This document shows positions 1,567-32,603 of a stretch of 64,000 bases of DNA, one piece after another; position 1 is the first letter of the stretch, and each line of letters begins with the position of its first letter. Source of the stretch: Chara braunii. Taxonomy: Eukaryota; Plantae; Charophyceae. Both the position numbers and the translations under genes were made by a program. Below the pieces are notes generated by a model, which worked only from the letters and a program-made list of their open reading frames with translations, was not told the origin of the DNA and did no database searches. The stretch is from positions 4,603,630-4,667,629 of the forward strand of contig BFEA01000027.1 in NCBI GenBank assembly GCA_003427395.1, read 5' to 3'.

Positions 1567-2110
1567 TTAAGATAATTGAAAAACTTGTTTCAACCGCAGA
1601 ATAAGTCGTGGTGGCAATTCAACGCATTTTCCATTTTTGCCACTCTGCCGGTTCTTCCCACTGTGCTACAGGTAGCCCTCATGAACCTGTGCTACCGGTC
1701 TGAATTTAGGATGGCGGGGGTAGTGAAGGTTATAATTTTAGACAAAGAATTCCCTCTTCAAGGAAGCCTCACGCCGTTTGGTCAAATCGCCACAAAACCA
1801 TTGACGCCAGCACGTCGTAAGTATGATTTTTTTTTGGCCGACAACCAGCGAAGGTGTTTTTATTTGAGCGATTACACGACATCCGGATAAACCAAATCAT
1901 ATTTGACCTTTGGAAAATCCATATGCGCTTCAAATTCACAAATCCCATTGATTGAAAAAAATTGCAGATAAAAAAATTGCAGATAAAAAAATTGCAGATC
2001 TGTCCATCTTTGTTATGTCTGGATATGGCGAGTTTCTACCAAACCGGAGCAGGACGGGGAAAAGAATGACAGATGCACTAGACAGGGGAAATCGTGTTGG
2101 AGAGGCAAAC

Positions 2111-2212
2111 CTTCTCTTCTGCGAGCTCCTTCTCCAGGCTTGAAGCTATAGCTTCGGCCTGCAGACGGTGTCCCTCCGTAGCTCGCTGCTCCTCATCCAT
2201 CCTGACCATAAC
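2111..2212 (-). CDS. TBC gene exon 16 ([34 protein letters not shown])
   Basis: gacag| ... |gtttgc; resembles the family V..R.E.EQ..TE..R..AE motif; no stop reached. Confidence 0.87.
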
Positions 2213-2666
2213 CTGTCCGTTTTCATCCCAAACAGCCACAACAAGCACCAATACCTTCAATAAAACAGCCCCCAGGAATTATCATCGGAATTGACTATCA
2301 ATTAAGGATCGCTTGAGAACGAACAAGTCTTCGAGCATCAATCACACTTCCACATGAGCGAACAAAGGGATTTCACGATGTCCTCATTCGGAAATCAGGC
2401 TCCCGCTAAGAAGAACTTCCACCTTTACTGCCTATGACAGACAAGGGAACATTTGAGGACAAAATAGCAATTTGGACTTGGGAGAGTTCAAAGGAATACG
2501 AAGCCCATTCTACAGGCCAAACACAGACTGGTAATGGAAATAGGCCTAAATATGCATATCGAGGGAGAAAGAAGGTGGAGAGCGAGAGAGAGAGGGAGAG
2601 AGAGAGAGAGNNNNNNNNNNNNNNNNNNNNNNNNNNNNNNNNNNNNNNNNNNNNNNNNNNNNNNNN

Positions 2667-2716
<50 letters not shown>

Positions 2717-5700: not shown

Positions 5701-8700
5701 AATCTGTTCTAAATAACTGACCAAATGTTAAGATTCTTCAGCAACAAAATGTCGATACTCGTCAGTAACTAAATGTTTATAACTTTATATTCTTCACCAA
5801 AGGGAAATACATGGAGTCCAACACCTTTACAACTGCCATCTCTTCTCAAACTCACAGAAGCACAATCATACGTCGTCATCAGGTTAGACCAAAGCACACA
5901 AGTGCAAACACACATGTGGGCAGGAGGGAGAAGAAATAGGACACTGGCAATGAGCCATCCACAAGAGTACACAGTGGAACTTTTCAAAATTATCTTCTTT
6001 TTCAGACAATGAGTAGGCAACACTTCCTGAACCCAGCAAGGAGTACCTGGGTGATAAGCTCAGTCACATCAAAAGATTCATCATCAGACCATGTGATCCT
6101 CTCCTCCTTTTTTCGGCCATCGTGCTCGACGGGCATCTTGTCTTCAATCAGAGGACTGCTCTTTGTGGAATCTTGCTGATGCCGATCGTCCTCACTCTCA
6201 GGCTCATAGTCAAATCTTCTACTCGTTGGTTCTGATTTATCATTGCGCTTCTCATCCGAGGTAGTTCTCCACCGTGAAAGTTCAATCGTCCTTGCCTCCA
6301 CACTCTCAAGCACAGATGGTCTGTACTCTTCGCGAACACTGCACAGGAGCTCCTCTGTAACATCCGCATAACCCATGCTTGCGATCAAAACAAGTTGGCT
6401 GCTATCAAATGTAGAACTTGCCATATTCTGCAGCACGCTGACCGCATCACCTACATCCTTGGTTGCCAATATCGCTTGGGCTGCAGATGAACAGACCAAA
6501 ACACAACAGAGCAACAAGAGGTTTAACGTATGGACGTACATAGCCGAGCTAGAACATATAGAAGGGCAATGCTGCCACAACAATCACTGCAACTACACCC
6601 AAATCCAGCCTAGCCAGACAAATAATTTGACTCTGAGTTGCACTTTTCAAAAGACATTTAGGAGCTCTTCGTAGTCAAGGAGATGACGAATTGCTTCCGA
6701 ATACGACAAGCTGACGACGCACACATACAGACAGCTGACTAGAGCGTACAGAAGACGAGAGATAACCAGTATGTTTCCAGCCTACCCTAGACTAACAGAA
6801 GAAAGTGAAACTGATCGAGTCAGGAGCTGAAGGGCAGGGTCTTGCAGAAATATGACTTTTGAGTCTTAACAAACAAACAAAAAAAGAATGAAAACCATTT
6901 CTCGATTTCTGTGTGTAATACTGTGTATTTTTATTATGCGGTGGTGCCTGTGCTGAAACGTGCAGTGGTGCCTGTGCTGAAACGTGCAGGTTTTTTATTT
7001 TTATTATTATTATTTTATGTTTTTTTGGGAGGGGGGACGGGGGGGGCGTATGACAGGAAGATAGGGATATAGCGAGGAGAGGGGGATATGGAGAGGTGGA
7101 GGAGGATGTGGACAAGGACGACGACGAGGATAGTGAGGACGACAAGGAGTCGTCGTCGAGATGGGGGATGAGAAGAGATGGATGGAGGGAAAAGAGGAAG
7201 GGCAGGAGGAGGAGGACGAGTGGGAGGAGGAGGAGACATGGACGGCGAGGAAGGGGAGGACACGAGGAAGGGCAGGAGACAAGGAGGCATGGAAGATGAG
7301 GACGTACGAGGATGAGGAAGGGCAGGAGGAGGACGAGTCGGAGGAGACGAAGAGGACAAGAGAGGAGGACACGAAGGATGAGGACGGGGAGGAGGAGCAA
7401 GGTGAGGCAGCACTCCTGTAAAAAAAAAAATCATCCCGATTATATTTTTGGTGGGGGGCCTCAAACGCACCGTTTTGACCCCCGGCCTTCTTGTTTTTTT
7501 TTCTGAGGGGGGTGACGGGTCGTTCCCCGCGCACGTCGTGCGCTGCACGGGATCGGTTGGGCGTGTGCGCCGCACGTAGGGAACCTTCCGCACAGCCTGC
7601 GCTTGCAAGTATGTTCCAATTGTAATAGATGTCCTGAAGCACATATATAGGACTCTCTCTTGGCAGCAAATTTTGTGACCTTTTGTTGAACATTTCCAGT
7701 ACACCCAAACAGGGTCCGCGCACTGCTTTTGGCAGCAAATTTTGTGCCCTTTTGTCGTACATTCCCAGTACACTGAAACAGGATGAGCCTGGACCTTGTC
7801 TTCTAATGGGAAAGTCGCGAAGTTGAAGAGCATCCTCNNNNNNNNNNNNNNNNNNNNNNNNNNNNNNNNNNNNNNNNNNNNNNNNNNNNNNNNNNNNNNN
7901 NNNNNNNNNNNNNNNNNNNNNNNNNNNNNNNNNNNNNNNNNNNNNNNNNNNNNNNNNNNNNNNNNNNNNNNNNNNNNNNNNNNNNNNNNNNNNNNNNNNN
8001 NNNNNNNNNNNNNNNNNNNNNNNNNNNNNNNNNNNNNNNNNNNNNNNNNNNNNNNNNNNNNNNNNNNNNNNNNNNNNNNNNNNNNNNNNNNNNNNNNNNN
8101 NNNNNNNNNNNNNNNNNNNNNNNNNNNNNNNNNNNNNNNNNNNNNNNNNNNNNNNNNNNNNNNNNNNNNNNNNNNNNNNNNNNNNNNNNNNNNNNNNNNN
8201 NNNNNNNNNNNNNNNNNNNNNNNNNNNNNNNNNNNNNNNNNNNNNNNNNNNNNNNNNNNNNNNNNNNNNNNNNNNNNNNNNNNNNNNNNNNNNNNNNNNN
8301 NNNNNNNNNNNNNNNNNNNNNNNNNNNNNNNNNNNNNNNNNNNNNNNNNNNNNNNNNNNNNNNNNNNNNNNNNNNNNNNNNNNNNNNNNNNNNNNNNNNN
8401 NNNNNNNNNNNNNNNNNNNNNNNNNNNNNNNNNNNNNNNNNNNNNNNNNNNNNNNNNNNNNNNNNNNNNNNNNNNNNNNNNNNNNNNNNNNNNNNNNNNN
8501 NNNNNNNNNNNNNNNNNNNNNNNNNNNNNNNNNNNNNNNNNNNNNNNNNNNNNNNNNNNNNNNNNNNNNNNNNNNNNNNNNNNNNNNNNNNNNNNNNNNN
8601 NNNNNNNNNNNNNNNNNNNNNNNNNNNNNNNNNNNNNNNNNNNNNNNNNNNNNNNNNNNNNNNNNNNNNNNNNNNNNNNNNNNNNNNNNNNNNNNNNNNN

Positions 8701-8717
8701 NNNNNNNNNNNNNNNNN

Positions 8718-8784
<67 letters not shown>

Positions 8785-11700
8785 CTAAACCATTTTAGGA
8801 AAGTGAGTGGAGGCAATGCTGCCAGGCAAGTCAAGGAAGCCGAATGATCATTGAAAAACTCCGTGGTGGCGTAAGCAGTACTGAGCACTCCCAATGAAGC
8901 AAATGAAGTGAGAAAGACATAATAGAAAGGGAAACAGATGAATGAAGGTCAAAAGTCAAAGACAGAGTGGAAACAATATCCATCGAGGCAATCCACCAAG
9001 ATGTCTAAGCATCAGGAAAGAGTGGAAGAAGTCGAGGCTTGTCGATCAGAAGCACTTTTTTCCAATGCGCTGTGCTGCCCAACCTTGAAAAAAAAAAACA
9101 CAAAAGTGGGTGCGAAATTGCCAGGCCCATCCAGCCTTTTCCGCGCAGCAGGCCAGATCTGTGATGTTGTGCCTGGTCGACTGCCCCAGGAACGAGATAG
9201 CTGGGAAATGTACAAGTGTTTTAAGACAAATTTTAGCTTCTTCTGTTCATTAACGTCACAAAATTGCACACGATTGTGAAACCCTGGTTCATGTTTCTGA
9301 ATGTGGTTGACTCAGCACAAACAATAAGGAGCCACGAGAAGGGATCAAGAGCCATTGGAATGCCAAACAATCCACACTCTATGGTGATGGTGCGCAATCA
9401 AACCCAGGCAGAATACTATTGAGACATCTTCACAGCAAGGCCAACGGTTATGATGTCAACAGTTGGAGGAAAAACCGAGAATGTAAATCTCTCTCCACAT
9501 TTTCAGCCATTAACACCTTCGATACTTTCTGGGCTGCCTAGGATGGCACCATCCACCTATCGATTTAGTCACCATAAGCCAACAGAGCACAAACTTCCAC
9601 TAGAGTACATCGTTTTCGCCATCAGAGGTCATGAGCCAACTAGAGTACATTGTTTTCGCATGACCTTGTCAGGACTAGACTATCTGCGGAAACCCCATAN
9701 NNNNNNNNNNNNNNNNNNNNNNNNNNNNNNNNNNNNNNNNNNNNNNNNNNNNNNNNNNNNNNNNNNNNNNNNNNNNNNNNNNNNNNNNNNNNNNNNNNNN
9801 NNNNNNNNNNNNNNNNNNNNNNNNNNNNNNNNNNNNNNNNNNNNNNNNNNNNNNNNNNNNNNNNNNNNNNNNNNNNNNNNNNNNNNNNNNNNNNNNNNNN
9901 NNNNNNNNNNNNNNNNNNNNNNNNNNNNNNNNNNNNNNNNNNNNNNNNNNNNNNNNNNNNNNNNNNNNNNNNNNNNNNNNNNNNNNNNNNNNNNNNNNNN
10001 NNNNNNNNNNNNNNNNNNNNNNNNCGCAAACTTCCACTAGAGGATTTCCGCAGATAGTCTAGTCCTGACAAGGTCATGCGGAGATACTACCCCTACAGAA
10101 CTACGCCTCAGAACCGAAGTACATCGCTTTCGCCATCAATCTGTTCAGATCAGTGGTTACAAGAAACTGAAATCAATTCGCATGGGCACAGTTGTGTGCA
10201 TTCTGCAAGAGAGGTCAACATATGTTCATTCCTACAAATTTCACGAAGGCCCCACTTTGTTCAACATGCTGCGATGACAATGATAGGGAAGCCTTAACCA
10301 TGTCAGCCATCATGAACCGGTTCCCTGAGCACCCCTTCCACATCCGAGCCTCTTCTCGCAGAGCCGGCTTTCCCCTGCGCACCAAGCTTTTCCAAACCAC
10401 CAGCACAGCGCTTTCTTTTTTCCTTTGGCTGGCGCCGCAAGCCATTTTCATCCTGCAGCCCCAAGCCTCGGAAATTCTGAAGCTCGCCTACGCGACGTAC
10501 TGGAGGTTTACCAACGTAAATCCCACCACTCCTCTTTGTCACCCTCCACCTCGTCGTCCTCCTCTGCCTATGTTCAACAAACTACTTTGATATTATGATC
10601 GGCACCAAGCAGTGCAAATTGTGGGAACATGGGGTGAGTAGTGGAGCACAACAGAGAGTATAAAAGGCCACCAATATCACCATCACCAGAACTATAGGAA
10701 ATCAGTCTGCTTTTCCTTACTAGCTCTTTCCTTCCCTCTCCCTGACCACCTGGAGATGCAACATTCATTGCCAGGGAAACAAATGGATCATCATCACCAG
10801 CACCACCACTCGCTTATGACAACTTGTCCTTGACATCCACGTTAATGAATCCCTTGGCCCCCAACCGAACGAGATCCATACCAGCCATCAGAATGGACTC
10901 TGCTAGAGAGGCAGTCCTAGGAAAAAGATTTGGGAAAAGACATAATCAGCATGTCTTCGATCCTTGACAGCTTAACAAAGATGCACTCTATTCTGGGCTC
11001 CAACACAAAGCCAAGCAAGTTTCTGAGTTCAAGGCAAAAAAACACAAAAGCCACACATAGAGAGATGAGGTAAAGCAAGTACACAAGGATAAATGTCAGC
11101 AGCCACCAACAGCATCAAGATACCTTCAGGGTCACGAGCGGTTGCCTTACCTTGCATATCTATGAGAGCTAGAGCAGTTCTAAATAGCATGCTTCGATTC
11201 CCTTCATACAAAAGTGCATCCCAAACTCGCAGAACTGCAAGAGAAGCCAAAACTGAATGTCAATATTGTACATCACGTGAACTGCAGAGGATCCAGAAAT
11301 TATTCACGCAAGCGGCAAGTCACCCACCCGCTGCATGAGTAGAGAATGTCGACAGTGATCATTAAACCCTCTGCTTCGTTCAAAATCTAGAGACTCAAAT
11401 GGTCGCCAACAATTACCTACCTGGGAAATTTGCCCTCTAAGTTTGCAGGAAGTTCGCGCCCAAGCTTGATAACCAGAGACACAGTGTTTCACCTTCAAGG
11501 ATGACGTTTTTCCAAGAACCAACTTTCCAAGAAGTCAAACTGTCCCCGATAAACTTCCCATAGTCAAAATTGAAAGACTGGGGGGAGAAGGTAACACAGC
11601 AGTAACAGCACCCATCAGTCCTCTTCAAAATTGAGCAATACAACGCAAGCAGGCACAGAAAATCATTTGAATTGCTTTCACTTTGACAAAAGGAACGAAA

Positions 11701-13556
11701 AGAACCACAGAAACCATATCCAATTGTCCTTTCCACTGAAAGAATGTTTCGAAAGGTACGGAGTGCCAGAAGTCGTTACACAACCCACCTGATTCCCATG
11801 GCAATACATTGACAAATACCGAAAGGAACCAAGGCCCGCTTATCCAAGCCACCTGCACTCCTAGTGAATCAAGATGAGAAACTGCACATTTGGCACCAAA
11901 ACCCACAAAACCGTAAACGAAATCTCTTAAGTATACACACAGTGTCACAGACCCATATTTGCAAAACTGTAAATGATACATATTTGACCATGTCAACGAG
12001 TACTACACACATCTACAGTGAGCGTAAACTCTAAGGAATAACGTGGTTAACAGGGACCCCCACTTTTTAGCCCATAGATTACTCCCCCAAGCACTGAAAA
12101 CAGCATTGAGAATTTTTTTTTTTTTCAGGTCTTTTTTTCGCCCTGTTTTCTTTTCAGTCAAGATTTCCACGTGTCAAGTTTGGTGTTTGTTGGAGCCTTG
12201 GAGATGATTGTTTTGGCTGGACCTCCCCCTGCCAATCACCAGGTAAGCGTCCGCCAACCTTCCACACGGCCTTCCTCACCGCCAGAGGACAACCCCTGCT
12301 CCAAGCAACCCCTACTGTACAAGGCACCCTTGTCAGCTTGGCACCTGCCTTCTTCACAAGCACCCACTGCTATGGCCCTGTGCCTGAAAGGTGTCTCTAC
12401 TTCATACAGCCAAGTGTTGACTTGATGATGCTGCACCATAACGATTACCTTCATCCAATTTTTTTTTCAACTGTGCCGTCCTCTCGACTTATATACAGAG
12501 GCGCGGACCCTTTTTCAGTAAGGAGGTCCTGCCGACCAAAAAGTTCCAAAGTCGAATCTACCAGGCCAAATCTGAATGGTTCGTCAACTGGGCCTCCTGG
12601 GCCTTGTTCCCTCAAACCCAGGACACAGGGCCTAACAGCCCTATACTACCTGCTGCAACCTCCAGGGGGCTCGCATAAGTGATTTAGAGGGGCAACTTTT
12701 GACTGGAGCACTACCCCAACATCATATTCTTCCGATGTAAATACACAAAAACGTGTCTTTAACTTTTTTTCTTCCTTTTTCCTTTTTTCCTTTGCTTCTG
12801 TTTTTCTTGTACTTTCTTGTACACGAGGTCCTGATTCCTCTTCTCCACACTATGTCACCTGGGTCCCTTGGCTGGGCATGCCAGGCCAGACAGCTGTGGA
12901 CCTGGACAGGCCAAAAGAAGGGGAAGAAATTGAAAGAAAAACTCTCTTCAGGCCAGATCTGTGGCCATGACCATTCAGAATCTGGCTTTATCTTTGAATG
13001 CCATCATGCTTCACCTACATGGCGCTTGGGGATGGTTTGAAATAGGTTAAAAAAAAAGGGGATAGGGCCTTTAGTCTTTAGGCTCTTTAGAAGGGTGTAC
13101 CTTAATTTAATTTCTCCTTCGCTTTCTTTTTTTTTCCCAACCAACAGTGCAAGGCTTGCCGATGCATCTGGAAGCTTTGGATGAGCAATGCACTGTGCAC
13201 CTCAATAGCTGGCGGCACCAGGCAAAAAGGAAAGAACAACGACTCACCAAATTGTGTTTTTTTGGTGTGCAGGGGAAACTCACCTCGCAGAAAAGACGCT
13301 TGGAGGTACTGGTGGTTTGAAAACAAATTTCTCTTAATTGCTGGAAAATGTGTCCAGGGTCCCTTGTAAATTTTACTCGCCAACAATTCCCAGCATGAGG
13401 GACCCTAAGTCGGAGGCATTGGCTGCTTCCTGAGACACAAGGACTATCTGTCCTCCATCCCTGTTCCTCGTGTTCTGCTAACTGTCCTTAGGACACACAT
13501 TCCAAGAGCCCCTGTGGGTTGCTCCTCAGCCCGGTCTGGCTGCCTGATTGTTATGT

Positions 13557-13590
<34 letters not shown>

Positions 13591-16500
13591 NNNNNNNNNN
13601 NNNNNNNNNNNNNNNNNNNNNNNNNNNNNNNNNNNNNNNNNNNNNNNNNNNNNNNNNNNNNNNNNNNNNNNNNNNTCTGCACTGCAGTGGAGGACAACAG
13701 GTAAACTTGGACGATAATGCCCTGGGGTGCACCATACAAATGGTCCAAATGATTAGGCCTCCAGGGCTTTTGTGCACATGTCCTCCTCCAAGGCCCTTTC
13801 GTCAGTTTAATACTCCAGAATCAGCCAATTCCACATACTCTTTCGTCAGATTGGTCTCCTGCTTCCCCATGCGTGTGTTGTCCACTCCAGACCACTCGCT
13901 TAACAAACCAACACAGTTGCACATCTCATAGAGAAAGAAGCCAATGCATTGTCTTGACCACACCATCAACAACTAAAATACAAGAAATGCAAACGCAAGT
14001 ACACGAACTCCATATGCATGAATAAACAAACCAAGCAACACCGGTGCGAACAGAAAGGATGCACACGCAAACATTTTGATCTAAGCCTCCAACACCAGTC
14101 AGAAGCCACAGGATCACAACTCCCTTAGTCTGCCACAGAACGAAGACCTTTGTCACCAAGTCATGATTACACCCCGTAAGTTTGAAAGGAGAGAGTGAGA
14201 GGACTGCAAGCCCAAAAGAACCCAATTACACGTTCGTTTTTTGAAAGGCATGCAACACAGGGTAGAGTCTCGGTTGAATTGTTTCCCAAGCATCACGAAG
14301 GAGACCCTCCAAAGGTAATCCTTCTGAGTTACCACCCAGCAAAGGGCCTCACTGCTACACTAGGTGTGAGACAGGGTCAGGCATGCAATCAACTCACCGA
14401 CTCTGGGAAAATATTTCCGGACAAGATTATCGAGAACGAGTTGATCCACCTGGAAAGGAAGCCAACGATGAGTAGTGTCAACTCCAGCAGCAAATTGAGA
14501 AGGGCCACTGCTAAACCTGCCAGACTCGAAATATCTAAAGGCCTCAACTGGTAAAACAGCAAGAACAAGCTCTCAGATGAAGTGCATGGACACAGAGCGG
14601 ACTGAAATTTATACCCTCACCACAAACAGCCCCGTGAACTGAACTGATCACTCGTCAAGATGAGCACACGCCACACACCTGTGCTGCACCATGCCTTGAT
14701 TCATTATACTCAAACACCCATGGACAGGTTTCAATAAGTGCCAGGCAGACATGCCTTAGGCTAGTCTTCTTTTTTTCTTCTTTTTTTTTGCTTTTTTTTT
14801 GCTTTTTTTTTTTAACTAATCTATATTCTTCGCTCATATACCTCACTCTACCTGCCTACCTCCATATACGTCCACTTTTTTTCCAGGGGATGCTCAAGGT
14901 GATAGGTTGAGTTTCCAGCCTTCCCAGTCTATCCTGCTCTGGCGGGGAGCAGTACCCCGGATCCTAACACCTGGCATGAGCTGAAAAGCCACCAACTTGC
15001 ACAACCAGCCAGGAGGCCCAAGCCAAACATCTCCGCCGGTGAACCCAAAGCGCATAGGCTAGCCTCATTCCTGACAGGCACTGAATGGTGAGGGAAACCA
15101 CAAATTCTCAAGCAACCATCTACGTTCAGACCCAAAGGTTACCCATGTACCCCAGAAAAAGTCCAGTGGATGTGAACCTGCACACCGTGACACCACCCTG
15201 TGACCAATCAGATCATGGTCACAAGTATGATAACTTTACGCGTGTGAGAACGTTTTTCTTAACCCTGTGGGTTTAATCATGGGTTTTAAAATTCAGATTT
15301 TTGTTTTTTCTCACTTTTTTTTAATAGAACGCCCCTTCGAATATAACACCCGGGTGTTATATTCAAATAGAACGCCCGGGCATTATATTCGAATGTCGCA
15401 TGGGCAGAGTGCCTTGTAGAGGGAGATTACATGGGTTTTAAAGGGCGGAAAGGGGCGTATACATGGGGTTGAAAGGGGTTTTGACTTCCAACGGGTATGT
15501 TTTGGTTTGTTTTTTTGTTTTCTTTTTTTTATTTCCGAATTTATAAGGATTTCTGAAGTGACCCTCAGCCAAAAGTTGGTGGCATTGCAGTTCTAGACAA
15601 CATATTTTTTTTAACAGAATTTTTGGATTTGTTTTTTTTTTTGTCCGAATTTTGGGGCTCCACCGAAGTTGCCACCAATTTACTGAATACAACGCCCGCT
15701 GGGTGCCATATTCATATACAATGCCCGGGCATTATTCAGGTGAAGACGGTAGTTATCAGTACCATGTCAACATCACGGCTCTTGATGACACCTCGTTTCT
15801 CTCCAATTGTGTTCATTCGAAATCACATGGTCATGCATGCACAGCCTCGCACCAAGGCTTAACACGTCAGGACCTCACCCCCAATGAATCCAGGCAGGTC
15901 AAACATAGTAGAGCTCATTTACAAACATTGATTTCATCTCAGCCAAGCACCTCCACATTCCCATCCTTATACTTGCAGCCTTGTTGATATCGTTAGCAGA
16001 AGCAGCACCGTTGCCACCCCCGTCTCTGTCATCAGTATTGTCGTCACCATTCTTCATCATCACTCTTTATCGCTATCATCATCATCATAATCATGACCCA
16101 GCCCCACAGGGAAAGAATCTGCAATACATGATCTGGACAACTTTCCAAAGATCTGCCTCCCCTTCATCCTTAAAACTGTGAACCAATTGCTATGCAACTC
16201 ACCTGTGCTTCGACCATCTTTTCCGTATAGTAGCCTTCAAAGTAGTCATCAATTATCGCAACGAGACACCTGGAAAAAGGGAACACCACAATTTCAGCAT
16301 ATCGCAGAAGGGACCTACAGAGCCTTCGTGCAGACAACTCAGCAGAGCCCACGCATGTCACCACTTCTGGCATCAAACAGAACATTGTTTGCCACACCTA
16401 CTGTATGGTTGGTATTCATCTGCTCCTCACCCTCCTCTTCCTCCTACCTCTGAAGCGAGGGTTTATAGCTCTATGCCAGAGGTTTGTAGCCTCGTCCTCC

Positions 16501-20252: not shown

Positions 20253-23200
20253 CGGATGCTGGGGCTACCCACACCGTGCCATCAGGCCTGACATTTTTCC
20301 AGGCAGTCCCTTGGCCGCCTAGGCGTCTCCAAGGCCTTTTAGCAACGCTCGTTTTATCCTGGTCTAGGTCTCATTTTCAGAAATGTGTCCGAACATGCAC
20401 AGGTTGGTCCTGTTCAGACCCCTCTGGCAGATACCTTTTCAAGTTTTGCTCCAGCTTGTCTGTTTATGGCTGGGCTTGTGTCCATATTCTTATGCCAGGC
20501 TCGGTTTTCTTTCCAGGCCTAATGCCAAGACAGCAGGGGAGGGCCTGGACTCGGGTAGGGACCCAGGGCACACGTTTTCAGTCTTGGGCCGGTGTTTGGT
20601 CACACGGCCTCCCAGCTGGGCTGCCAAATCCTTGGCCAGTCATATGGCCCCGATGAGAGGCCGGGTTGGATGTTGGCAGGCCCAGTAATATACAGGAGAG
20701 GCCACCCCAGTAGGAGGCAGGTAAACCTTCACTCGTGAATTTCGTGTGCTAATTCATTCTTGAGCTTCCACAAAGTTCATGCCGTCGACGAAAGTGCAAT
20801 AGCAGAAAGAAGATTTTTTGTGAACAGGAGAGGCCAGCCCAGTAGTAGGCAGGTAAACCTTAATTCACTCGTGAATTTCGTGTGCTAATTCATTCTTGAG
20901 CTTCCACAAAGTTCACATCTGTGCCATCGACGAAAGTGCAATAGCAGAAAGAAGATTTTGCGAAGTTTCTCAAGGTCATATGGCTCACTTGAAAGCAAAC
21001 ACAAAGCCAGTTGTCATGATGAAGTTTCAATATTCGATGGCACGCCTCAAAAGCAGAAGTGAAGTCTCTTGCCCCAATGATGTTTCCTTCCCTTGCTCGA
21101 GACAGGCAAGACATAGACCCCGGTGACTTGACATCGAAACATAAACCACAAAGCCACACATGCACTGTGAAACAAATACACAAGAAAACAACGGATACAC
21201 CACATGGGGAACCAAACTGTCCAACACAAAGTATTGAGCTCTGGCAAACCCTGGCCAGCATGTGCTGTGCGGAACAGCAATCACACGCACTGCAATACCA
21301 ACCTTTTCAATTTGGCTGGTCCACTTCTCAAGAATACCATTCTCTGTCTTCTGATAGTTGGCAGCAGACCTGCTCTCCGTATTCAAACCTCCTGTTCCAT
21401 CACCATCGCCGCCTCCATCTGCAAGCAAGACTAATAGCGCATTGTAATGTCCAGGTATCTTCCGCCATTTTGCACCTGAAAATAGCTGCCATAACTGATC
21501 CCCAGGGAACAAAGTTCAAAAAACAGATAAAAGATTGTCAAGCGAGCACCGTGACTCTGAAGTTCTGGAGGCAAGCTGTCATGCACCATCGAACATACAG
21601 CTCGGATCCCAAGTTCTGTTGACTAGTGTTGGTAAGCAACGATGAACTTTAGGGGTAACTATTATTGACCCCCAACAGGTGGAAAGCATCAGGCTATTGG
21701 AAACAATGGGGTGGCTTCAGATAGGGAGAAGAGGACAAAAGACAAGGGCCTGTGACAAACTGTTTATGCATGACGGTATATAGATATATATTTGATGAGT
21801 CGGTGAAACTCCGACGAAACAGTTTGTCACAGCCTCTCATTTGTTGTCCTCTTCTCCCTCTCTGCCTACGGCTTACCAGGCAGCTCTGTTTGACGACATA
21901 TATAGTATATATCGTCAAATAGAACTGCCCGGTAAACCGTAGGCAGAGAGGGAGAAGAGGACAACAAACGAGGGGCTGTGACAAACTGTTTCGTCGGAGT
22001 TTCAGTATATATATCGTCGAACAGAGAATATATATTGTCACACTGTGAATCAGAGCGTGAAGGCGAAAAAAAGCAAAACAAGGAAAGGAAAAGAAGCAAG
22101 GAAGGAAAGCCCCACCTGTTCATCACCTCTTACGTACAAGGTCAGCCACGAGGATGACAGGTTGAGCGCTGGCTGCCCCCATCCCCGTGTGTCACAAGGA
22201 CCCACTTGCACGCAGCCAAAAGGCAAAGAGGTGAAGAAAAGGAGGAGGAAACCAGACCTTACAGAGGCAAGAGAAAGAGAAAGGTCAAAGAAAAGACACA
22301 GAAAGAAAGCAAATGACACATCCCACAGATAAACCAATTGCCACTGTCACTACAAAGTTCAACATATTTCTTTTTTCTTTTTTCTTTTTTCTTTTTTCTT
22401 TTCTCCAGAAATTGTACTTTTTGTCTTTCTTTCTTTTATCTGTTCTACAATTAGTGTTGCTCCTGATCGCTTAATTCTATTGACCAGTCAGGAAGAGGAG
22501 CCCCCACCCCGGCAGATGGGCCAGGCACGCTGAGGATGACGTGGATGTCCACAACGATACCCAAGGAGAGCTACTTCAGCACAGCATTCAGCAGGGCAGC
22601 TAACACGGACCATCCCATCAAAACAGTCCTGACAAAGGGCATGCTGTCCACATGTCAAGAAAACAGCAGGACGTTCATCACAGTGCGGCATCATGCAGTC
22701 CTGGTAGTGTCCTTGAGAACAAAAGGGACAGCGAATATCTGGGTGATAGGGATGTGTACAATGAGGAAATGTTGGACACCCTTCAGCACAGACGGCGGCG
22801 GCTGCAATAGATTGATAATGTTGATGGCATAGCTGATGAATTCCGCAGCCAAGACGCACCGCGTCCCTGTCCCGACAGGTGTCACACGAGACTCGATCAA
22901 TAATCCAGAATAAAGTATGATTCCGTAATGCACACAGAAATTCGTTTATGTCAAAAATAGCCTGAATCATTGTCCCACCATCCCACAGTTCCCACTGGGC
23001 AGCTGCACGAATGAGTGCCATATAATGCCCAGGTCTGTGCAAATTACAGGCAGAAATATGAGGATGGTCATTAAGGTCATCGCCTGGCGTCGCATGATGC
23101 ATAAGAAGGTGGCGACCGTGGAAAGCTAGCTGTAAAAAATTTACAGTAAAGCCTCCTGAGGTAGTATAATTACTACCTTCAGGCGGTGGACCAGTATGGT

Positions 23201-23657
23201 CATACAACAACTGATTTTCAACAGCGTCAAGCTGATAAGCAATTGTAACAAAATGGGAAGCAGTATAACATTGACGCTGATAAGCCCGTAGGCAGACATT
23301 TGTGGCTGTCAACCCACAAGCATTTGGTAGATCTACCCGCAGATCCGATTCGGTCACCACTGGAAAGCTAGGCCTGATCTGGCGGGTTCGGCGCATGAAT
23401 GACGAACGCCGTCAACGTGGCAGAGAAGGCTGTCGGTAAGACAAAGAACCCCGCAGATTAGCATCAACACAACGTCGAGAGGAAGGGGGACTGGGAGGAG
23501 GAGAGAATGAACAAACCTGCCAACGTCCCAATATAGACAGCGAAGACAAAGGAGGGGCCGATCTCAGCCGGCGTGGGGGGGCAAATGATGACGAAGAAGA
23601 AGAAGAAGAAGAAGAAGAAGAAGAAGAAGAAGAAGAAGAGACAAAGACACGGATGAT

Positions 23658-23713
<56 letters not shown>

Positions 23714-24618
23714 AGAAGAAGAAGAAGAAGAAGAAGAAGAAGAAGAAGAAGAAGAAGAAGAAGAAGAAGAAGAAGAAGAAGAGGACGCTGGCAAAGAGGA
23801 AGGAGAAGGAGAGGGAGGGGGAGAGGGAGAGGGAGAGGAAGGCGGAGGGGAAGTGGAAGGTGAAGGAGAAGGAGGAGGGGGAGGGGGAGAAGAAGGGGGG
23901 AGTATATATATCAGCTGTCGTAAGGAAGGGCGAAAGAAAAAAATTAAGCCAGTTACCCACAGCTTCCAGAGCACACCAGTGAATATCTGCATAATACAGG
24001 TCAATGCTAGGTTATTGCAAAAGAGAGAACCAACACAAGTTGACCAATACCACCTCCTCATTGATGACAAGCCACCTTACGCCGAGATGATTGGTAAGCA
24101 TGAGGGAGGATGGTTTATGAGGTTGAAAACTAACAAAGAACCGAATAGCAGCTGCAAACCAGGAACCATTTCAAAGACAAACCGAGGCCGCAACAAGGAG
24201 TTGGCAAATACGTAGAGATGTCATTCGGAGTTCGCACAGAAGACGAAAGAAAAGAGGCAAATGAGGACAAGGAAAAGGACGAGCAGATACAGCTTGGGAG
24301 TCAAAGAACATAGAGAAAGGAAAAGGAACATAAAGACAGCGAACTGAAGAACACAATAACACGAGCAACAGCAGCAGGAAAAGAAAAGGCCAGTCAACAT
24401 CACTAATAATCACCTCTCCTCTCATTGCCATTGGAACTCCTCCGCGGACAAGCGATCGTAGCTCATCATGCCAGGTGCAAACAACAGGTGCATCTTCCTT
24501 GTCATCCGTGTGTCCATTAGTCTCCTCGTCATTATCTCCCACCTTCACTTTCACATCCCTAGTCGGCTTTTCTAATTTATTTTCCTGGCGCTTCTCATCC
24601 CAACCGTTAGATAACAAT

Positions 24619-24654
<36 letters not shown>

Positions 24655-27600
24655 ACTCCTCCCTGCAAGTCTTCCCCCATCCCAGTGGGGGAGGTTCCCT
24701 CGTCCTCGCTCTCTCCTCCATCATTGAAGGGGCCCAATGGCACATCCTCAAGCTCTTCTCGGTCGCTTCCATCATGAGACCTGCACACAACGGTTGAAGT
24801 TACCCAACGCACCTTTGCAATTAAGTTTCTGAGTAAACTTTCCGGGAGAACAAGAACTTGCTAATTCACCTTAATTGTACACTCAGAAGTGGATAAAAAA
24901 CAAAGCAACTTAAAAATGCCAGTACGCCACCCCAGCCTTGCTGAAAATGCAACTCGCAGCCTACAAAAGTTTCAGCCTGCCGGACCACAATGGCTGGCGG
25001 CACCAGTCAAAAAAGAAAGAAAGTGCGCCGATGGCGGTTCGAAAAACCTTGCCGCGCAGTAAAGGCGCCTCCAGGCCCGGGTGTACTGGTGATTTAAAGA
25101 GGGAAATTCAAACTGCGACTGAGAAGTTAAGATTTGTGGACTTTTTGTATCAAATGGGAGAACAGGAAACATGTCGCTGAATGGTACACCCGCACAACAG
25201 ATCATGAATGCAAACCCTGATGGAATGAGATAAAACACTTGCAGTTACACAACACACCTTTGCAGTTAAGCTTCTGAGTACATGGAGGGCGAGAACTACT
25301 AATTATTCACTTCATCATGTCAAGCAAGAACGAATCAACCATGCTAGAAGCAGGCAAAAAAAACGCAGAAATCTCAGTTGGAAAATTCTACCACGTTGCA
25401 ACTCAGAAGTAAGGATTCGTTGGGTTCACTGCATGAAGTGGGAAAACGGGAAACATGTGGCTGAATGATACACACATGTAACAGATCATGAGTTTAAACC
25501 CCAATGGAAGGAGATAAATACAACATTGTTAGAGGCTACCCACTAGAAAAGAAGAGAGTGAGAGAAGGGGAAACAAGCGATTAGGAAGAGATGAAGATGG
25601 AGAATCAAACAGCAAACAGCTGGGGGGAAACAGTCACTGACGCCCAACATTGAACCTGGTCCCCCTAGCGGTTAGCCTAGCACCGTGTTGCAGCATCGCG
25701 GCCGATCCGATTCCCACTTTAAGATTTCCGTCGCTAGCATACTTGCTAGCCTATCAGCATTGTACACGACCCAAAAACAACTATTCCACCCCTCGCTCAA
25801 ACACAGCTGAACCAAAAGCTGACCTATTCCTCAGTCCATAGATTGTGGCAAATAGATGATATTGTAGCCCAGAAAGAGGCCCCTAAAGTGCCAGATGAGG
25901 TGAAAATATTAAAGGAGGAACCCAAGGGAGTCGTGGGTGAAGAGGTCGGGGTACTGCCAGTGGCTATGATCCAAGGCTCCCTTACAGAGGGGTCAGATAC
26001 CATGACTGCTGACCAGGAAGGAGTGTCTAGGCACACAGCTCAGAAACGGAGAAAGGTGTGACAAGTGTGTGTATAAAAAAGACATGCACATTGCAAAAGG
26101 TCAAACGTGCAGGATGCACACAATAGATGAAGCTATACCATTGATCGACATGAATCATATGTGAAACCATAAAGCTTTTGTCAAAGAAAGCATGGGTGGC
26201 AGGCGACGTGGAGAAGAAGAAAGATGTGTACTCGAACGGGAACAAACAGTGGAGCAGCGGGCTGATGGTAGAACAAAAAACTACGCCGATAGTATTCAAC
26301 ACAGCGATAATGGAACAAACAATGACCAGTGTCAGACAAACAGCAGAAGATCGGATGAGTCTGTTCAGGTAATGAAACCCGGAGAATTTGCCTAACTCAG
26401 GAAACCACAGGCACTCGTCTGGCTGACGGCACAGGAGGGGCCAAGAGTGGATGGCCATGAGTGTGAAAGATGAATTGGATGCAAGATAGTCCTTCAAAGC
26501 GAGTGTCAAAATAATAGAGTAAGACGAATTACATGGGTAGACGGAGCATGGACATAGCAGGACGAGCCCCTCACAAGCGTTAACCGGCAATGCCCACAAT
26601 AAAGGATGAGCAAGGCCACAGTTTTGAAGACAGCCCAACTGCTGCAAAAACGTGTTCAAACTTCAAATCTGATAAACTGTCAAAGTGAACAAGCCTGGTG
26701 CTTGATTGGGGGGTTGGGGGGGTGGGGGGGGGTGGGGAATGTTGGAGGTGGAGCTGTAATAATACTTAACAGAGAAACCGTAACCAGCTGCTTTGTCAAA
26801 GATAGTCATATAATATAAGCCACCAGCACGAAGTCGAAGTACAGGAAACATTCTGCTTTGTCAAAGATTGGTCATGTAATGCAAGCCATCGGCACGAAGT
26901 TGAAGTACAGGAAATATCCAATGCTGCTGTTTCATTTGATTGACGCCCATCGTCCTGCTGTGGTTTTCTTCAATTCAAGGCCATAGTCTTCTCACAGCGG
27001 TGACAGTTAACCCCATGAAGGAGCTAATGACATAATCATCATACGACAACCTTGTAACTAGTGAAACTGCTTGGGGACACAATCATTTGACAAAATCACC
27101 GCTGTGGTACGCAGCGTTGCTCTAGAATTGCTGTGGACACAATACAATCATTTATGGCTAGCAACATGGCTGCTCGATGCGCTGCTGCCTGGGGTGCCAC
27201 GTTGATAGTTAAAAAAAAAAAAAAAAAAANNNNNNNNNNNNNNNNNNNNNNNNNNNNNNNNNNNNNNNNNNNNNNNNNNNNNNNNNNNNNNNNNNNNNNN
27301 NNNNNNNNNNNNNNNNNNNNNNNNNNNNNNNNNNNNNNNNNNNNNNNNNNNNNNNNNNNNNNNNNNNNNNNNNNNNNNNNNNNNNNNNNNNNNNNNNNNN
27401 NNNNNNNNNNNNNNNNNNNNNNNNNNNNNNNNNNNNNNNNNNNNNNNNNNNNNNNNNNNNNNNNNNNNNNNNNNNNNNNNNNNNNNGTAGTCTCGGAGCC
27501 AGGCTCATGAATTTGTACTCTGACACTGCACACATTACGGACGTTATTTTGGACACCGGACATTAGAGAAGCATACTGATCTCTCCTTCTGGGCTGTTCA

Positions 27601-30600
27601 ATTCATGGCTCACTTTCTGGTTTCAAGGAGCACTATTCTGATACCATCATGAATGTGTGACAAAGTGTGACAAGTTGAATTAGTAACCGATAATGTTGGT
27701 TCCGGTTTTGTACGCAAGCATGGTCAAGAGAGAGTGGACACAATTAGGTGAAAATTCAGTCCGTTCCAGCGAAACATAGCCAAGTAGGGTCCTAATAATA
27801 CATAGACAGGATAGAGACCGATAGACAGCTTATAAGGTACCTTGTCTTGATCTCTTGTTCAGCGGGCGGTTCAACACCACCCGACTCCCTCTCGGTATCA
27901 TACTTGACGACCTTCGCCTCCACTTTCTCCCATGGCTCTTTGGGACACCCAACTGTGCCGTCCGAGGTAACATGTTCACCGCCCTTTTCTGCTACTTCTG
28001 CACATTCACCATCACTCTCTTCACAATCCTCAAACCTCTCACTTCCCTCACTGGTTTCGCCAGAAGTGACATCTTTGCAGATGGCCTTGGACACTGCTTC
28101 CCATGCATTTTTATTTACAGAAGCAGAACTGTCATCCGGAGCCTCAGCAACATCGACCGAGGCCAGTGATTTGACATACTCGTCAGAAGCAGAACGGTCC
28201 TTCAACAACTCTCGTTTTACAATCGCAGCATCACCCTCCAGCTGCACGGCACCGGACTTCTCATCCTTATCAGTTGCCACAGCATTCAGCAGCTCTTCTG
28301 AGGCTGCGGAGGTCTCTTGCAGCCTTGGCAGCTGCTGCCCAAGCCCAGCATTATCACCAGTGTCAACAGCAATAACTAGCTTAGTCTCTGAAGAAGGGAC
28401 CCTTTTGAGCGGTGGCAATGACACTGTTCGTAGCAGTCCAAACTGCATACTTTCTCCACCGTTTACGCAGGATACAGAGCGATCATACACATGCATCCCA
28501 TGACGTGTCCCTGCCCGATTGTCTTGTTGTCTGAATGCCGTTTGCAGATCGTCCACCAAAACGGCGTCCAGAGGAAGGACGGTCCCGGACTTGCGCCTCA
28601 TTATTGTGAGAAGACCCGCATCACTTGTTGTAGGCTTCCTGTGCCTTTTCTTCTTCGTCTCTTCATGTTCGGTAGCCGTAGTAGTCGGCGTGACGCATGC
28701 CTCATTATCGTCAGCACGACCAGCGTCCTCCGTCGACTCAGACGAAACACTTGCATGCACATTAGCGAATCCATGCTTTCGCGCCTGAAGCCTCAGTGCT
28801 TGCTCTACTGCCCAAAGTGAGCGCCGGCACATTGACCACGACCGAACAGGCTCTCCTCCATTTCCCACTGCTGAGGGAGACTGCAAGGCAGTTGCGTCAC
28901 TTTCAGAACGTGTTGCCGGGCTGGGAAGAGAGTCTGCTGAGCTCTCTCTAGCCTTGTCAGACTCAATTCTCCCATTTGCCTCAAGCTCACGTGGAAGAGA
29001 GTGGGTCGCAAGCGTGTTTCTTTCCGCATTGGCAGGAGAAGCTTCACATCCTGGCTCAACGTACGACGTCAAGAAGTGATCCCACCGTTCTGCACGCTCT
29101 GTCTCTTCTTCCTATTGAAACAGACAGCCACCAAGGAACAATTGATGCAATGAGCCACATCAGACAGCAAAACACATACCGTAAAAATCACAAACACACA
29201 CGTAATAAAAAACTGACATGTTTGCCTTTTCTATCATTACATATGTGATGTTAAGGCCCCTCCGGGCCACAACCAAAAGACTTCAAGCGGAGTTGCAGAA
29301 ACGAGAGAGAGATAAAGACATGGTAAACCTCGAGAGAGGCAGAGAGAAAGAGAAAGGACATCAAGATAGCAAGAGTCGCAAGAAAGAGTGGCCATAGAGA
29401 GAGAGGGGGGGGAAGAAAACGAGCGACGGAGAGACAAAAGTGAGAAAAAGAGCGAGAGAGAAAAAGAAAAAGACGGGGGGGAGGGGGGAGAGAGAGATCA
29501 GGAGGGAGATGTGACATGGGAAAGAGCAAGAAACCCAATGGACGATCATAAAATGTCGGAAAGGGGCACGACACAGAGAGAGAAAGGGGAAAGAGAAGAC
29601 TAGCCGGAGAGCGCCACAAAGCGATTGACGTTGAGAGGCAAAGACAAAAGGAAAGAGAATGAAAGAGGGAGGAAGAGAGAGCCAGGGAGACAGGGGTGTG
29701 GCAACAGATAAACAGAACGGGACAGAGAGGCAGGGAAAGGAAGAAGGGACAAAGTGTCAGGGTGGGAGAGAAACTGAGACAGACACGAATGAACGGATAG
29801 GAAGAATGAANNNNNNNNNNNNNNNNNNNNNNNNNNNNNNNNNNNNNNNNNNNNNNNNNNNNNNNNNNNNNNNNNNNNNNNNNNNNNNNGGAGGGTGGCG
29901 GTGGGGTGGCGGTGGGGTGTAGTGTGCATGGGGTGGGGCAGTGGGGTGGGCGGTTGGGGGCGGGGTGGGCTACGGGGTTACAGTGTGAGGATAGGGGTGG
30001 GATGCGCGGTAGCAGTGTGAGGGTGGGATAGGGGTGTGGGCGTGGGTGGCGTGGAATGCAGCAGGTTGGCTGCGCTTCATGACCTCTATGGCTGACATCA
30101 TCAGTTAATGGCGTGCTCAATACACGCTGCCACTATTTTATTCCAACTCCTAAGTAAACAGAATCGACAGCAGTCTCCAGCCGCCAGATCATAGCACCGT
30201 TGATACCGTTGGATCCAAGTTCTGTCCATCAAACTCTGCACGAAAACACGTTACAAAAATAAGAATTTGCCACGCAGTTTGGGATTTGATGCCATATGAG
30301 GGGAACAAATATGAGGGGAGCAAATATGAGGGGAACAAATATGAGGTGACGGATGGAGAGAGTAATACTCTGATTGAGGGCATAGAAAGACGCGAGAATG
30401 GCCGACAGGAGACAAAGCACACGAGCGAGATCGAGGATTTTATGCCAATTAGATCCGCGATTGAGCTATACCTGGTAGATCCGCGAGTACTCCTTGTACC
30501 GAGCCACGTGCTGTGGACGCACAGCGAAGCCATACATATCTCTGCACGTCAACACCAACCACAAACCGAGCACGACGTACAATCTTTGTAAGAGGGAGAT

Positions 30601-32603
30601 CAGAAGACAGAAAACCACAAAAACCACACGGGTGACAAAAGCCATAGGCAAATGCCACACGGGTCACAAAAAGACGAAGAGGAGATCAGAAGGCTGAATT
30701 GTCAAATGTTCGTAAAGGGAGATCATGAGTTCAATTCCCTGAGGGATAACTGCCATGACATTACTGAAAAGAAAAAAAAAAAGCGAGAAAAGACGAGATC
30801 CTTCCTTATGAGGGAGGATCCAAGAAGAGTCAATCCAATCTCAGTCGGACTCGATGTGAATCGTAGTCCAGATTTTGTTGGTTTAGTGAGGGCGACCGTG
30901 CAAGTCACCGAGTGAATTGCCCACTTTGGGGCTTTAGCACAGCATTTCTCGAATACCACACGTCATGGTGCAATCTGCACAGCATGCTTTCTCCTCCTCC
31001 TTCCTTGCATCCTCCAAATTCATTACTTCATCTAGAGAATAGCATGTTATCATTCACGCTATCCACTGGAACGATTTGAAACGAGTCTGGTCCAAAATTC
31101 AGTCAAGTGCATCCTTAGGAACCAGTTTATCGTGTCTTCATTATGACTCCACTTCGAACCACTTTCACTGCACTGCCTCGTACAAAATTCCCCTCCCCTC
31201 CACCGACGGGCCTAGCTCCGTTGGTAAACCGACGGACAGTTGAAATGCACACCTGTGGTCGAATCCGGATGCAACAAGTTGAAAGAAATTTTGAAGTATC
31301 ACATGGCTGGTCGCTGATATGACATGGCAGTTGAATTTCTTTAAAAAAAAAAAAAAAAAAAAAAAATCAGTCCACTCCATATTCGGTGAGGGTAGTTGCT
31401 GTCGAGAAGGGTGTGAATGGACATTTGACAGTGCAGAACGGTGAGAAGACAACTGAAGACGACGAGGAATGAAAGAGCAAGACCAGTGGTGGTGAAAGTG
31501 GAAATAGATAATGATGACGGAGAGGGAATAGAGCTGAAGATGATGAGCATTCAGAAAAGAAAAATCAGGAAAAGATGAGCGATGGAGGAGGAGGAGGAGG
31601 AGGAGGAGGAGGAGGAGGAGGAGGAAATCGAATAGCATCAACAATAGACGAGAAAGGGACAGGTTCAATCCTAGAGTGCTCATACCAGTCCCAGGACAGT
31701 TCCTTGTCTTTGATTCAGAAAGGAAGAGGAGGGGGGGGGGAGGAAGACGAGAAACGGAGGAGATGATCAGCCGATAGGGAAGAGAGATGTCACAAAGAGG
31801 AACAGATGATTGAGGGAAAAAGGTATTACCCAGAGAATAGAGATGAAGATCAAGAGGAGAGCCATCCACTCCATATAACTGTAGAGATAGTAGAGAGGCT
31901 GGCTAGGCAGCGGCAAGATAACCCACCAGCCCCTCCATTCCGCTAATATACAGTAATTAGCGGAATGCTGATAGTTAGACAAACCGTGAAGACGAAATTC
32001 CACGGACGTACTATCTTCTTCCCCCGAATACAACGTACGGTCATTATAGCTGTATTTGACGCATCTCTCAGTCTAGATACAGCTAGAATGACCGTACGTT
32101 GTATTCGGGGGAAGAAGGTAATGACGAAATGTCTATATGAGTGTCATGCATTCGACAAAGAACGCAGAAAATGCATTCAACAGATTCCTATGACGTGCAT
32201 AATGACAACTCGTGTTCCCTTTCATGACATTTTCTGTCGAATGCATTTTCTGCATTAATTTGGGGTATCAGCAGGAGCGTGTTCCCTTTTCGCACACGTT
32301 CGTGCAGCGTGTTCCTCGCTTCCCGCCTTTCTGATTCTGACCATGTTAATGGAATCCGCCCGCTAAGCTCCTGCTGATAACCCAAATTTCATGGATGCAC
32401 ACCTCCATCACGCACAGCCCACTACATATGGGCTCAATCTGTTCACCTACCTAAACATCTACCTGCCACAGACACGCCGAAATGCTCACGGGCATCTATG
32501 CAATCCATCGAACATCCGAGCAGTTTTATTTCTCCCTAACCCTACGTATCCCTGTTTTGTTTCGTCCACGACGATTATGAGCACAACGGCTTCAAAATAT
32601 CGA

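Follow-up and report, generated by a model that had tools for sequence, protein, structure and literature searches.

A Josephin- and RING-like reading frame of Chara braunii as, very probably, the 3' remnant of a Chlamys-type Penelope-like element

The reading frame and the element around it

The DNA considered here is a stretch of 64,000 nucleotides from the charophyte Chara braunii (assembly GCA_003427395.1, contig BFEA01000027.1, positions 4,603,630 to 4,667,629 of the forward strand), which as a whole is referred to below as the window. A preliminary description, made from the letters alone, had drawn attention to an intact 909-bp open reading frame (ORF) and read it as a Josephin-like protease fused to tandem RING-like fingers. 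The ORF listing of the window recovers this frame on the minus strand at 22488-23396, running from ATG to TGA and encoding 302 amino acids. In our view the ORF very probably represents the 3' part of a Chlamys-type Penelope-like element, in a copy that is dead and has lost its 5' end; Craig et al. (2021, Mol Biol Evol 38:5005, PMC8557442) described elements of this type under the name Chlamys-1_cBra. The features of this copy are as follows.

22488-23396, minus strand: intact 302-amino-acid ORF, very probably the C-terminal tail of a Penelope-like element polyprotein, with a Josephin-like domain and two RING-like modules
22893-23354, minus strand: Josephin-like papain-fold domain, residues ~15-168, candidate triad C27/H124/D139 (Pfam, model and fold matches)
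22719-22886, minus strand: RING-like module 1 (residues 171-226), carrying the insert cluster C203/C213/H215/H218 (alignment, profile and model searches)
22512-22697, minus strand: RING-like module 2, residues 234-295, seventh ligand lost (W292) (Z RING profile match, zf-RING_5, relatives and reads)
23397-23640, minus strand: remnant of the polyprotein linker, in frame upstream of the ORF (homologous to the copy L001 up to a poly-Ser run)
23641-23960, no strand assigned: CTG/CTT and CT-rich microsatellite block, with the probable 5' truncation junction inside it (no reverse-transcriptase-like sequence directly upstream)
22035-22487, minus strand: 3' untranslated region (UTR) of the element, with its GTGACAA end at 22035-22041 (alignment of eight Chara 3' ends)
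22126-22213, minus strand: conserved 3'UTR motif of ~88 nt (kept across subfamilies; predicted stem)

The frame does not begin where the ORF begins. The ATG of the window corresponds to Leu in L001, a 72%-identical copy on a contig of ENA ERZ27272674, and upstream of it the frame stays homologous to L001 as far as a (TCT)n poly-Ser run found in both (~23593-23639 in the window). An in-frame stop at 23412-23414 lies five codons upstream of the window ATG, and L001 has its stop at a different place. With homology continuing in frame beyond an ATG that is not kept, the ORF must be part of a longer frame. Past the poly-Ser run the DNA consists of microsatellites only, with no sequence resembling a reverse transcriptase (RT) directly upstream, which indicates that the copy was 5'-truncated within the linker. 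The compact module that the preliminary description had envisaged thus gives way to a truncated polyprotein tail with a non-conserved start codon and, as set out below, a damaged zinc ligand.

The 3' end is better defined. Eight aligned Chara 3' ends include the terminus GTGACAA followed by (TA)n in the window and in the loci L004, L005 and L006, and the 3' end of another subfamily lands in (CA)n. Within the 3'UTR, the motif of ~88 nt retains 76-79% identity between subfamilies that have no more than 28-47% identity in their proteins. Its predicted stem includes two compensatory pairs, and the motif may serve as a cis element for recognition by the RT of the element. Further copies of this motif were located as follows.

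L003: 943-1029
L004: 11245-11330
L006: 15184-15268 and 56673-56761
L007: 31494-31579 and 54131-54215

An exhaustive protein search with the ORF returned seven relatives, and a word-indexed search returned one close homolog. Two of the relatives (P0001 and P0002) come from ENA ERZ27272674, one (P0005) from Logan SRR10607546, and two (P0003 and P0004) are encoded in the C. braunii assembly GCA_003427395.1; the remaining two are annotated C. braunii proteins, P0006 being GBG77352.1 and P0007 GBG64487.1. None of the seven relatives from the exhaustive search is a long RT-bearing protein. The genomic neighbourhood was read from ~215 kb of Chara loci, where the order of parts is RT, low-complexity linker, Josephin domain, two to four RING modules, 3'UTR motif, GTGACAA and microsatellite. 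In L007 an RT at 23620-26322 is followed by a Pro/Thr/Ser-rich linker, RING modules at 30039-30996 and the 3'UTR motif at 31494, and L006 carries a nearly intact Josephin followed by four zinc modules. A distant copy in L005 presents, on one strand, RT-like ORFs at 8558-9537, a repeat-rich linker, a Josephin at 10400-10723 and zinc modules at 11506-11844. The same locus holds two closer copies: copy A (13040-13712) aligns with window 23271-22599 at 88% DNA identity, and copy B (inverted, 15636-14669) with window 22841-21898 at 91%. Their 3' parts are common with the window copy and their 5' ends differ, A starting at residue 43 directly after another repeat and B at about residue 187.

These properties agree with published ones. 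Three kinds of Chlamys Penelope-like elements have been described in C. braunii, with very high copy numbers, 5' truncation, tandem or inverted insertions and microsatellite targets; in one of them, Chlamys-1_cBra, the protein is extended at its C terminus by a weakly Josephin-like region and by a second motif in which many Cys and His are conserved (Craig et al., 2021, PMC8557442). The window ORF matches this tail by description and comes from the same genome, and high copy number, 5' truncation, tandem and inverted insertions and microsatellite targets are also seen among the Chara copies examined here. The ORF of Chlamys-1_cBra is ~1,800 amino acids long, whereas the window retains only the tail, ~1.6 kb of element. 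The second motif, left unidentified in the published element, is read here as a pair of RING-like modules that each carry a third Cys/His cluster, and other Chara copies have four such modules. The architecture, which the preliminary description had not recognised as described, was accordingly already in print in 2021; its suggestion that the ORF was possibly mobile is borne out. What is added here to the known Josephin-bearing tail is a small increment, namely fold support for the Josephin domain and the RING reading of the C/H motif.

A Josephin-like domain and two RING-like modules

The resemblance to Josephin proteases, first noted by eye, is borne out by profile and by predicted structure. 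Pfam PF02099 (Josephin) matches the ORF with E 7.3e-5 and 23.1 bits, below the gathering score of 26; the alignment sets residues 27-135 on profile positions 6-121, with C27 at position 6. Among the relatives, P0005 passes the gathering score with 29.2 bits and the others reach 17-22 bits. A search of PDB sequences by phmmer with the ORF gave no match. A full-length AlphaFold2 model, built from a 16-row alignment of relatives, has a pLDDT (predicted local distance difference test) of 70-91 at residues ~20-168, and the top six Foldseek matches of this model in the PDB are all Josephins (E 7e-6 to 1e-4), among them ataxin-3 (1yzb and 2dos), ATXN3L (3o65) and JOSD2 (6pgv). In VIA-align the Z score is 13.8 for 3o65 (150 residues, root-mean-square deviation (rmsd) 3.0), 13.4 for 6pgv and 12.9 for 1yzb, with 127-151 residues aligned to Josephins at rmsd 3.0-3.6 and 15-21% identity; bacterial Josephins score ~10, and C39 peptidases, staphopains and others at most 9.9.

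The candidate triad C27/H124/D139 proposed in the preliminary description is found at those positions and is conserved in relatives, most of which keep C, H and D/N in the corresponding columns, with S in P0005. In the model C27 opens the helix 26-38, and H124 and D139 lie on successive, adjacent strands. The Gln of the oxyanion hole, five residues before the Cys, is absent: the Asp reported at this position is indeed Asp22 in the window, relatives have I or P, and an Asn at -2 from the catalytic Cys is conserved among relatives in its place. As modelled, the protease part adopts the Josephin variant of the papain-like fold, and the arrangement of C27, H124 and D139 is papain-like.

With the Josephin deubiquitinases (ataxin-3, ATXN3L and JOSD1/2; PF02099, MEROPS C86) the domain thus shares the fold, a Cys at the start of a helix and a spacing of 15 residues between His and Asp/Asn, as in ataxin-3 according to the preliminary description. 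It differs from them in its low sequence identity and sub-threshold Pfam score, in lacking the oxyanion Gln and ubiquitin-interacting motifs, and in being fused to an RT polyprotein and zinc fingers; a deubiquitinase activity of the Chara domain is putative.

The combination is also found elsewhere. The contig L002 (Logan SRR10607546) is GC-rich and encodes P0005, with a Josephin above the Pfam threshold and a single RING-like module. Before these domains come a C2H2-like CPRC...H...H motif and a Pro-rich frame, open as far as the contig start. The Josephin-RING module therefore occurs outside the Chara copies examined.

The two Cys/His repeats that the preliminary description had likened to RING fingers are real, at residues 171-226 and 234-295, and align with each other and with the repeats of the relatives. 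Their nearly invariant columns are twelve ligands per repeat, eight of which have RING spacing, C-x2-C-x9-C-x2-H-x2-C-x2-(H/C) ... C-x2-C, and four of which are extra. The RING-spaced ligands are C171, C174, C184, H187, C190, H193, C223 and C226 in module 1, and C234, C239, C249, H252, C255, C258, position 292 and C295 in module 2. The four extra Cys/His residues (C203, C213, H215 and H218 in the first repeat) lie in the long loop of 29-33 residues that separates ligands 6 and 7; this cluster probably forms a third zinc site in each module.

Pfam zf-RING_5 matches residues 230-271 with E 0.027 and 14.9 bits (cutoff 27.9) and was detected in two of the 11 modules tested, the best E value being 4.7e-4, below the family threshold. 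When a profile of the 16-row alignment was compared with the PDB, the best sequence match was the arenavirus Z RING finger (E 0.008). The zinc part of the full-length model has low pLDDT, 40-58, and module 1 folded alone reached a mean of only 66.7, with a beta-beta-alpha core made of a beta-hairpin followed by a helix. Foldseek found four matches only to the module 1 model, all TRIM RINGs with weak E values (3.8-8). Exhaustive comparison by VIA-align placed 35 of 48,161 chains at Z>=2, with low scores of 2.1-2.8, and all 34 matches listed are RING, U-box or related zinc domains of E3 ubiquitin ligases. Weak as each line is, they are consistent with the predicted modules being RING-type fingers. 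Ligand spacing and the modelled beta-beta-alpha core are shared with RING-type E3s (RING-HC and RING-H2), from which the window modules differ in the extra insert with four conserved Cys/His and in scores below family thresholds; E2 binding is putative. Overall, the reading of the ORF as a Josephin with tandem RING-like domains has held, and that of the published C/H motif as RING is plausible.

One ligand of module 2 is missing in the window. The preliminary description had remarked that the module ends in WPICR, one base from CPICR, and relatives do have CPxCR: Cys292Trp is private to the window copy (codon 22521-22523, TGG), Cys stands at this position in every relative, and reads of other copies have TGT. 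A conserved zinc ligand has therefore been lost.

A different lesion is seen in L001, where the first Cys of module 2 (L001:978-983, window residue 234) is replaced by TGA and the conserved frame continues beyond it (MMPLCEERPAVFLACGQH). The simplest view is that L001 is dead and has acquired a nonsense mutation here. Naiad elements of animals encode selenocysteine (Craig et al., 2021, PMC8557442), and for this reason a UGA at a Cys ligand is worth a look.

Reverse-transcriptase linkage, decay and competing explanations

In L005 and L007, RT-like ORFs are found upstream of the tail in the same orientation. Those of L005 contain the motifs DFTTMYTNLPH, IGIPMGTN, RLIDDVL and FLGARL. The RT piece matches P0008, which carries GIPMGTNASPNIANL, at E 3.6e-28, and the language-model neighbours of the RT-like sequences are RVT_1 clusters, at 0.89 and 0.95 (0.95 for P0008). 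Against the PDB, phmmer returned for the RT piece only a chance nanobody (E 1.1), and a two-sequence RT profile returned nothing. Chlamys-type elements are marked by a GIY-YIG endonuclease at the N terminus and a CxC motif. The ORF just upstream of the RT in L007 contains PGNCPCQK; Pfam found no GIY-YIG in L007, and the corresponding part of L005 is an assembly gap.

The window itself contains an RT remnant in addition to the tail.

26566-27018, minus strand: heavily decayed piece of an RT thumb from a related element (detected by tblastn using the RT piece of L005, E values 7e-6 and 6e-5)

It shares the strand of the ORF, 3.2 kb upstream of it, and contains several stops and a frameshift; when window 23900-27200 was compared by BLAST with the sampled Chara loci, it alone was found. 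Because the decay of the remnant and that of the ORF are very different, it is disfavoured that the two once formed one element, and the remnant is probably an older, separate insertion.

Several observations weigh against the assignment and have to be kept beside it. The RT-like ORFs of L005 and L007 have no Pfam match, and because Pfam is silent the identity of the RT is argued from motifs, the homolog P0008 and the language-model lead. Linkage to the RT is seen in more distant subfamilies, at 28-46% protein identity, and among the loci examined there is no RT-attached full-length element of the subfamily that is 88-91% identical to the window. Membership in Chlamys-1_cBra was judged on sequence features by the published description. 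The window and L001 have a similar 5' extent, as far as the poly-Ser run, a coincidence one would not expect had each copy been truncated independently and at random. Finally, 11 of the 21 differences between the window ORF and the family are synonymous, more than pure neutral decay would lead one to expect; this comparison, which tempers the excess, mixes differences between subfamilies with private ones.

The DNA run of Chara contains thousands of short contigs that cover the stretch, and the summed word depth is ~3e2-2e5 over the ORF, climbing towards the 3' end, and 1.3e6 over 21900-22011; the Josephin-RING family is high-copy. The ratio of nonsynonymous to synonymous substitution (dN/dS, Nei-Gojobori) was calculated between the window and other copies: L001 gives 0.18, copy A of L005 0.21-0.23 and copy B, the nearest, 0.5-0.6, which suggests the usual pattern of a selected master lineage with neutrally decaying daughters. 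The ORF has at least 21 differences in 909 bases from the family majority. By our own estimate an open frame survives by chance in roughly one in three copies at ~3% divergence, so that the intactness of the ORF needs no selection on this copy. In two oligo-dT RNA-seq runs the depth over the ORF was 0-49, and the reads are mostly first mate on the plus strand, which in usual stranded libraries corresponds to ORF-sense RNA. At almost all diagnostic sites none of the reads agrees with the window (20/20 differ from it at 22892, 82/82 at 22142 and 15/15 at 23471). Since the letters read are those of other copies, the reads are evidence that the family is transcribed, not that the window copy is.

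Three other explanations were weighed against a truncated tail of a Chlamys-type element. It is extremely improbable that the window copy is a domesticated host gene, kept as a cellular deubiquitinase or E3 and expressed inside a host intron. An intact frame of 302 codons beside a badly decayed RT remnant, purifying selection relative to the relatives and the presence of the catalytic Cys, His and Asp might all suggest it, yet the sequence belongs to a high-copy repeat, its start codon is not conserved and a stop stands five codons upstream in a frame that is still homologous. The loss of a conserved zinc ligand in this copy only, the few oligo-dT reads, nearly all with the diagnostic letters of other copies, and the expected survival of an open frame in about a third of copies argue in the same direction. 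Somewhat less remote, and still improbable, is a non-autonomous element made of the tail only (linker, Josephin, RING and 3'UTR), copied in trans by the RT of full elements through the shared 3' end. All four copies of the window subfamily (the window, L001 and L005 A and B) lack an adjacent RT, the window and L001 both start near the same poly-Ser tract, and the 3'UTR motif and terminus are common to RT-bearing subfamilies. The starts of L005 A (after the other repeat) and B, however, point to variable truncation and not to a fixed unit; the 1-kb contig L001 merely stops within a microsatellite, the Chara DNA sampled is limited to ~215 kb, and a passenger with no use for its protein would hardly be expected to show a dN/dS of ~0.2.

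The remaining explanation concerns function and retains a modest chance, although we think it unlikely: the papain-like domain would be a processing protease with its cleavage site in the linker of the polyprotein, and the zinc fingers would bind nucleic acid or protein instead of acting as E3 ligases. Many viral papain-like proteases cut their own polyprotein, and here the domain follows a long low-complexity linker, lacks the oxyanion Gln typical of Josephins at a position that is not conserved, and is joined to modules whose RING evidence is weak, sub-cutoff in Pfam and with fold Z scores of only 2.1-2.8. On the other side, Josephins stand 3-4 Z units above other papain-like folds, P0005 passes the Pfam Josephin threshold, and every listed structural match of the zinc module is a RING, U-box or related E3 domain. 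Processing and ubiquitin-related roles are in any case compatible and do not exclude each other.

For the Chlamys-type element itself the following course can be proposed. In related Chara copies the Josephin-RING tail takes its place at the end of a retroelement polyprotein; the tail is under purifying selection, is subject to 5' truncation and is found at target microsatellites. A full element would encode one long polyprotein with an RT, a low-complexity linker, a Josephin-fold cysteine protease and two to four RING-like modules, and its RNA would end in the conserved 3'UTR motif and GTGACAA, landing in (TA)n or (CA)n microsatellites. Copying into DNA would begin at the 3' end and often break off early, and so fill the genome with 3' fragments. 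The window frame would then be open because it has diverged from the family by only a few per cent, and not through maintenance by the host. In active master copies the Josephin might cleave ubiquitin or ubiquitin-like proteins from their targets and perhaps process its own polyprotein as well, and the RING-like modules might bind an E2 or a ubiquitinated partner; together they could shield the element protein or ribonucleoprotein from ubiquitin-dependent destruction, or redirect host ubiquitination. We regard it as a tentative possibility, with the odds somewhat against it, that in active masters the C/H motif is a tandem array of RING E3 ligases with a third zinc site each, which with a competent Josephin would make up a ubiquitin-editing unit needed for retrotransposition. 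If so, it would be the first ubiquitin writer-eraser pair in a retroelement polyprotein, and the window copy would still be a dead relic.

The Dualen/RandI retrotransposons of green algae (Kojima and Fujiwara, 2005, as cited by Craig et al., 2021), which lack long terminal repeats (non-LTR), likewise combine a retroelement with a Josephin-like accessory protease; compared by description only, they belong to a different retroelement class, and no RING-like modules have been reported in them. Dualen/RandI elements are non-LTR elements with two endonucleases. Craig et al. (2021, PMC8557442) noted the Josephin-like proteases of Dualen elements, for which interference with protein degradation has been suggested, and for the function of the Chara Josephin tail they offered only this analogy. 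The resemblance to A20/TNFAIP3 and other editors that combine a deubiquitinase with an E3 is an analogy only, a cysteine-protease deubiquitinase fold and a ligase-type zinc module on one polypeptide: unlike the window ORF, A20 has an OTU domain and A20-type zinc fingers and is a cellular regulator, with no homology to it.

The practical consequence for annotation is that the window ORF should be masked as a repeat and not called a gene. The interest lies in the family, an unusual retrotransposon that keeps a ubiquitin-system protease and RING-like fingers under purifying selection (dN/dS ~0.2). Because the tail is selected, the use of host ubiquitin signalling by a retroelement becomes a testable question, approachable with a small recombinant module; it is this question, and not the locus, that matters.

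Two annotated C. braunii proteins also hold fragments of the retrotransposon tail, GBG77352.1 and GBG64487.1 (loci L006 and L007). In one of them, a model 75 kb long, the tail is joined to an amino-acid transporter (Aa_trans, residues 120-340). Both gene models are probably annotation chimeras.

The adjacent hammerhead-bearing unit and neighbouring sequence

The ORFs neighbouring the tail, at 24171-24812 and 27792-29072, have no Pfam match; a guess made by eye that 24171-24812 is a TBC-domain exon of a host gene finds no support from Pfam, and the intron setting given in the preliminary description is putative. Assembly gaps (N runs) interrupt the window at 27200-27500 and 29700-29900 and are also present in the Chara loci examined.

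Beyond the end of the element, the window contains a separate unit of much higher abundance, in three copies that are truncated at the 5' side and one that is inverted.

22005-22034, minus strand: (TA)n target microsatellite at 22028-22034, then a 3' fragment of ~23 nt of the hammerhead-bearing unit
21906-22004, minus strand: 99-nt 5'-truncated copy of the unit, CGAAAC half only
21791-21902, plus strand: inverted, tail-to-tail copy of the unit (inverted repeat and sub-cutoff Rfam Hammerhead_3 match)
21718-21765, minus strand: third, partial copy of the unit

The unit is ~100-120 nt long, ends in TTGACGA(TA)n and forms tandem and inverted arrays at (TA)n tracts; the tail-to-tail units of the window make up an inverted repeat (I1) of 99 nt with 93% complementarity. 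Sub-cutoff microRNA matches at 21837-21989 are explained by this inverted repeat and were discarded. Full copies begin with a type III hammerhead, as in L005 at 14755-14810 (39.8 bits, E 1.9e-7, below the Rfam cutoff of 48.5). The Hammerhead_3 match of the window (21791-21902) is likewise sub-cutoff, with 26.9 bits, and its core reads TTGATGAG where full copies read CTGATGAG. Loose read ends at 22004 continue into CCGACTCATCAGGAGG, the reverse complement of which holds CTGATGAG, and those at 21906/21916 into (TA)n. The 3' end of L006 has no Rfam hammerhead at E<=0.01, though CTGATGAG and GAAAC boxes are readable there. Copies of the unit were located as follows.

Window: 21718-22027
L005: 14386-14810 and 7419-7896
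L006: 56915-57035
L007: 49015-49097 and 60401-60465

The unit is the most abundant sequence in the stretch, with a DNA word depth of 1.3 million and an RNA depth of 1,400-3,800 per base. About half of the Josephin-type 3' ends examined adjoin it, and because only about half of them carry it the unit is taken to be a separate element. It may be a different Chara element sharing the (TA)n targets, perhaps Chlamys-2_cBra.

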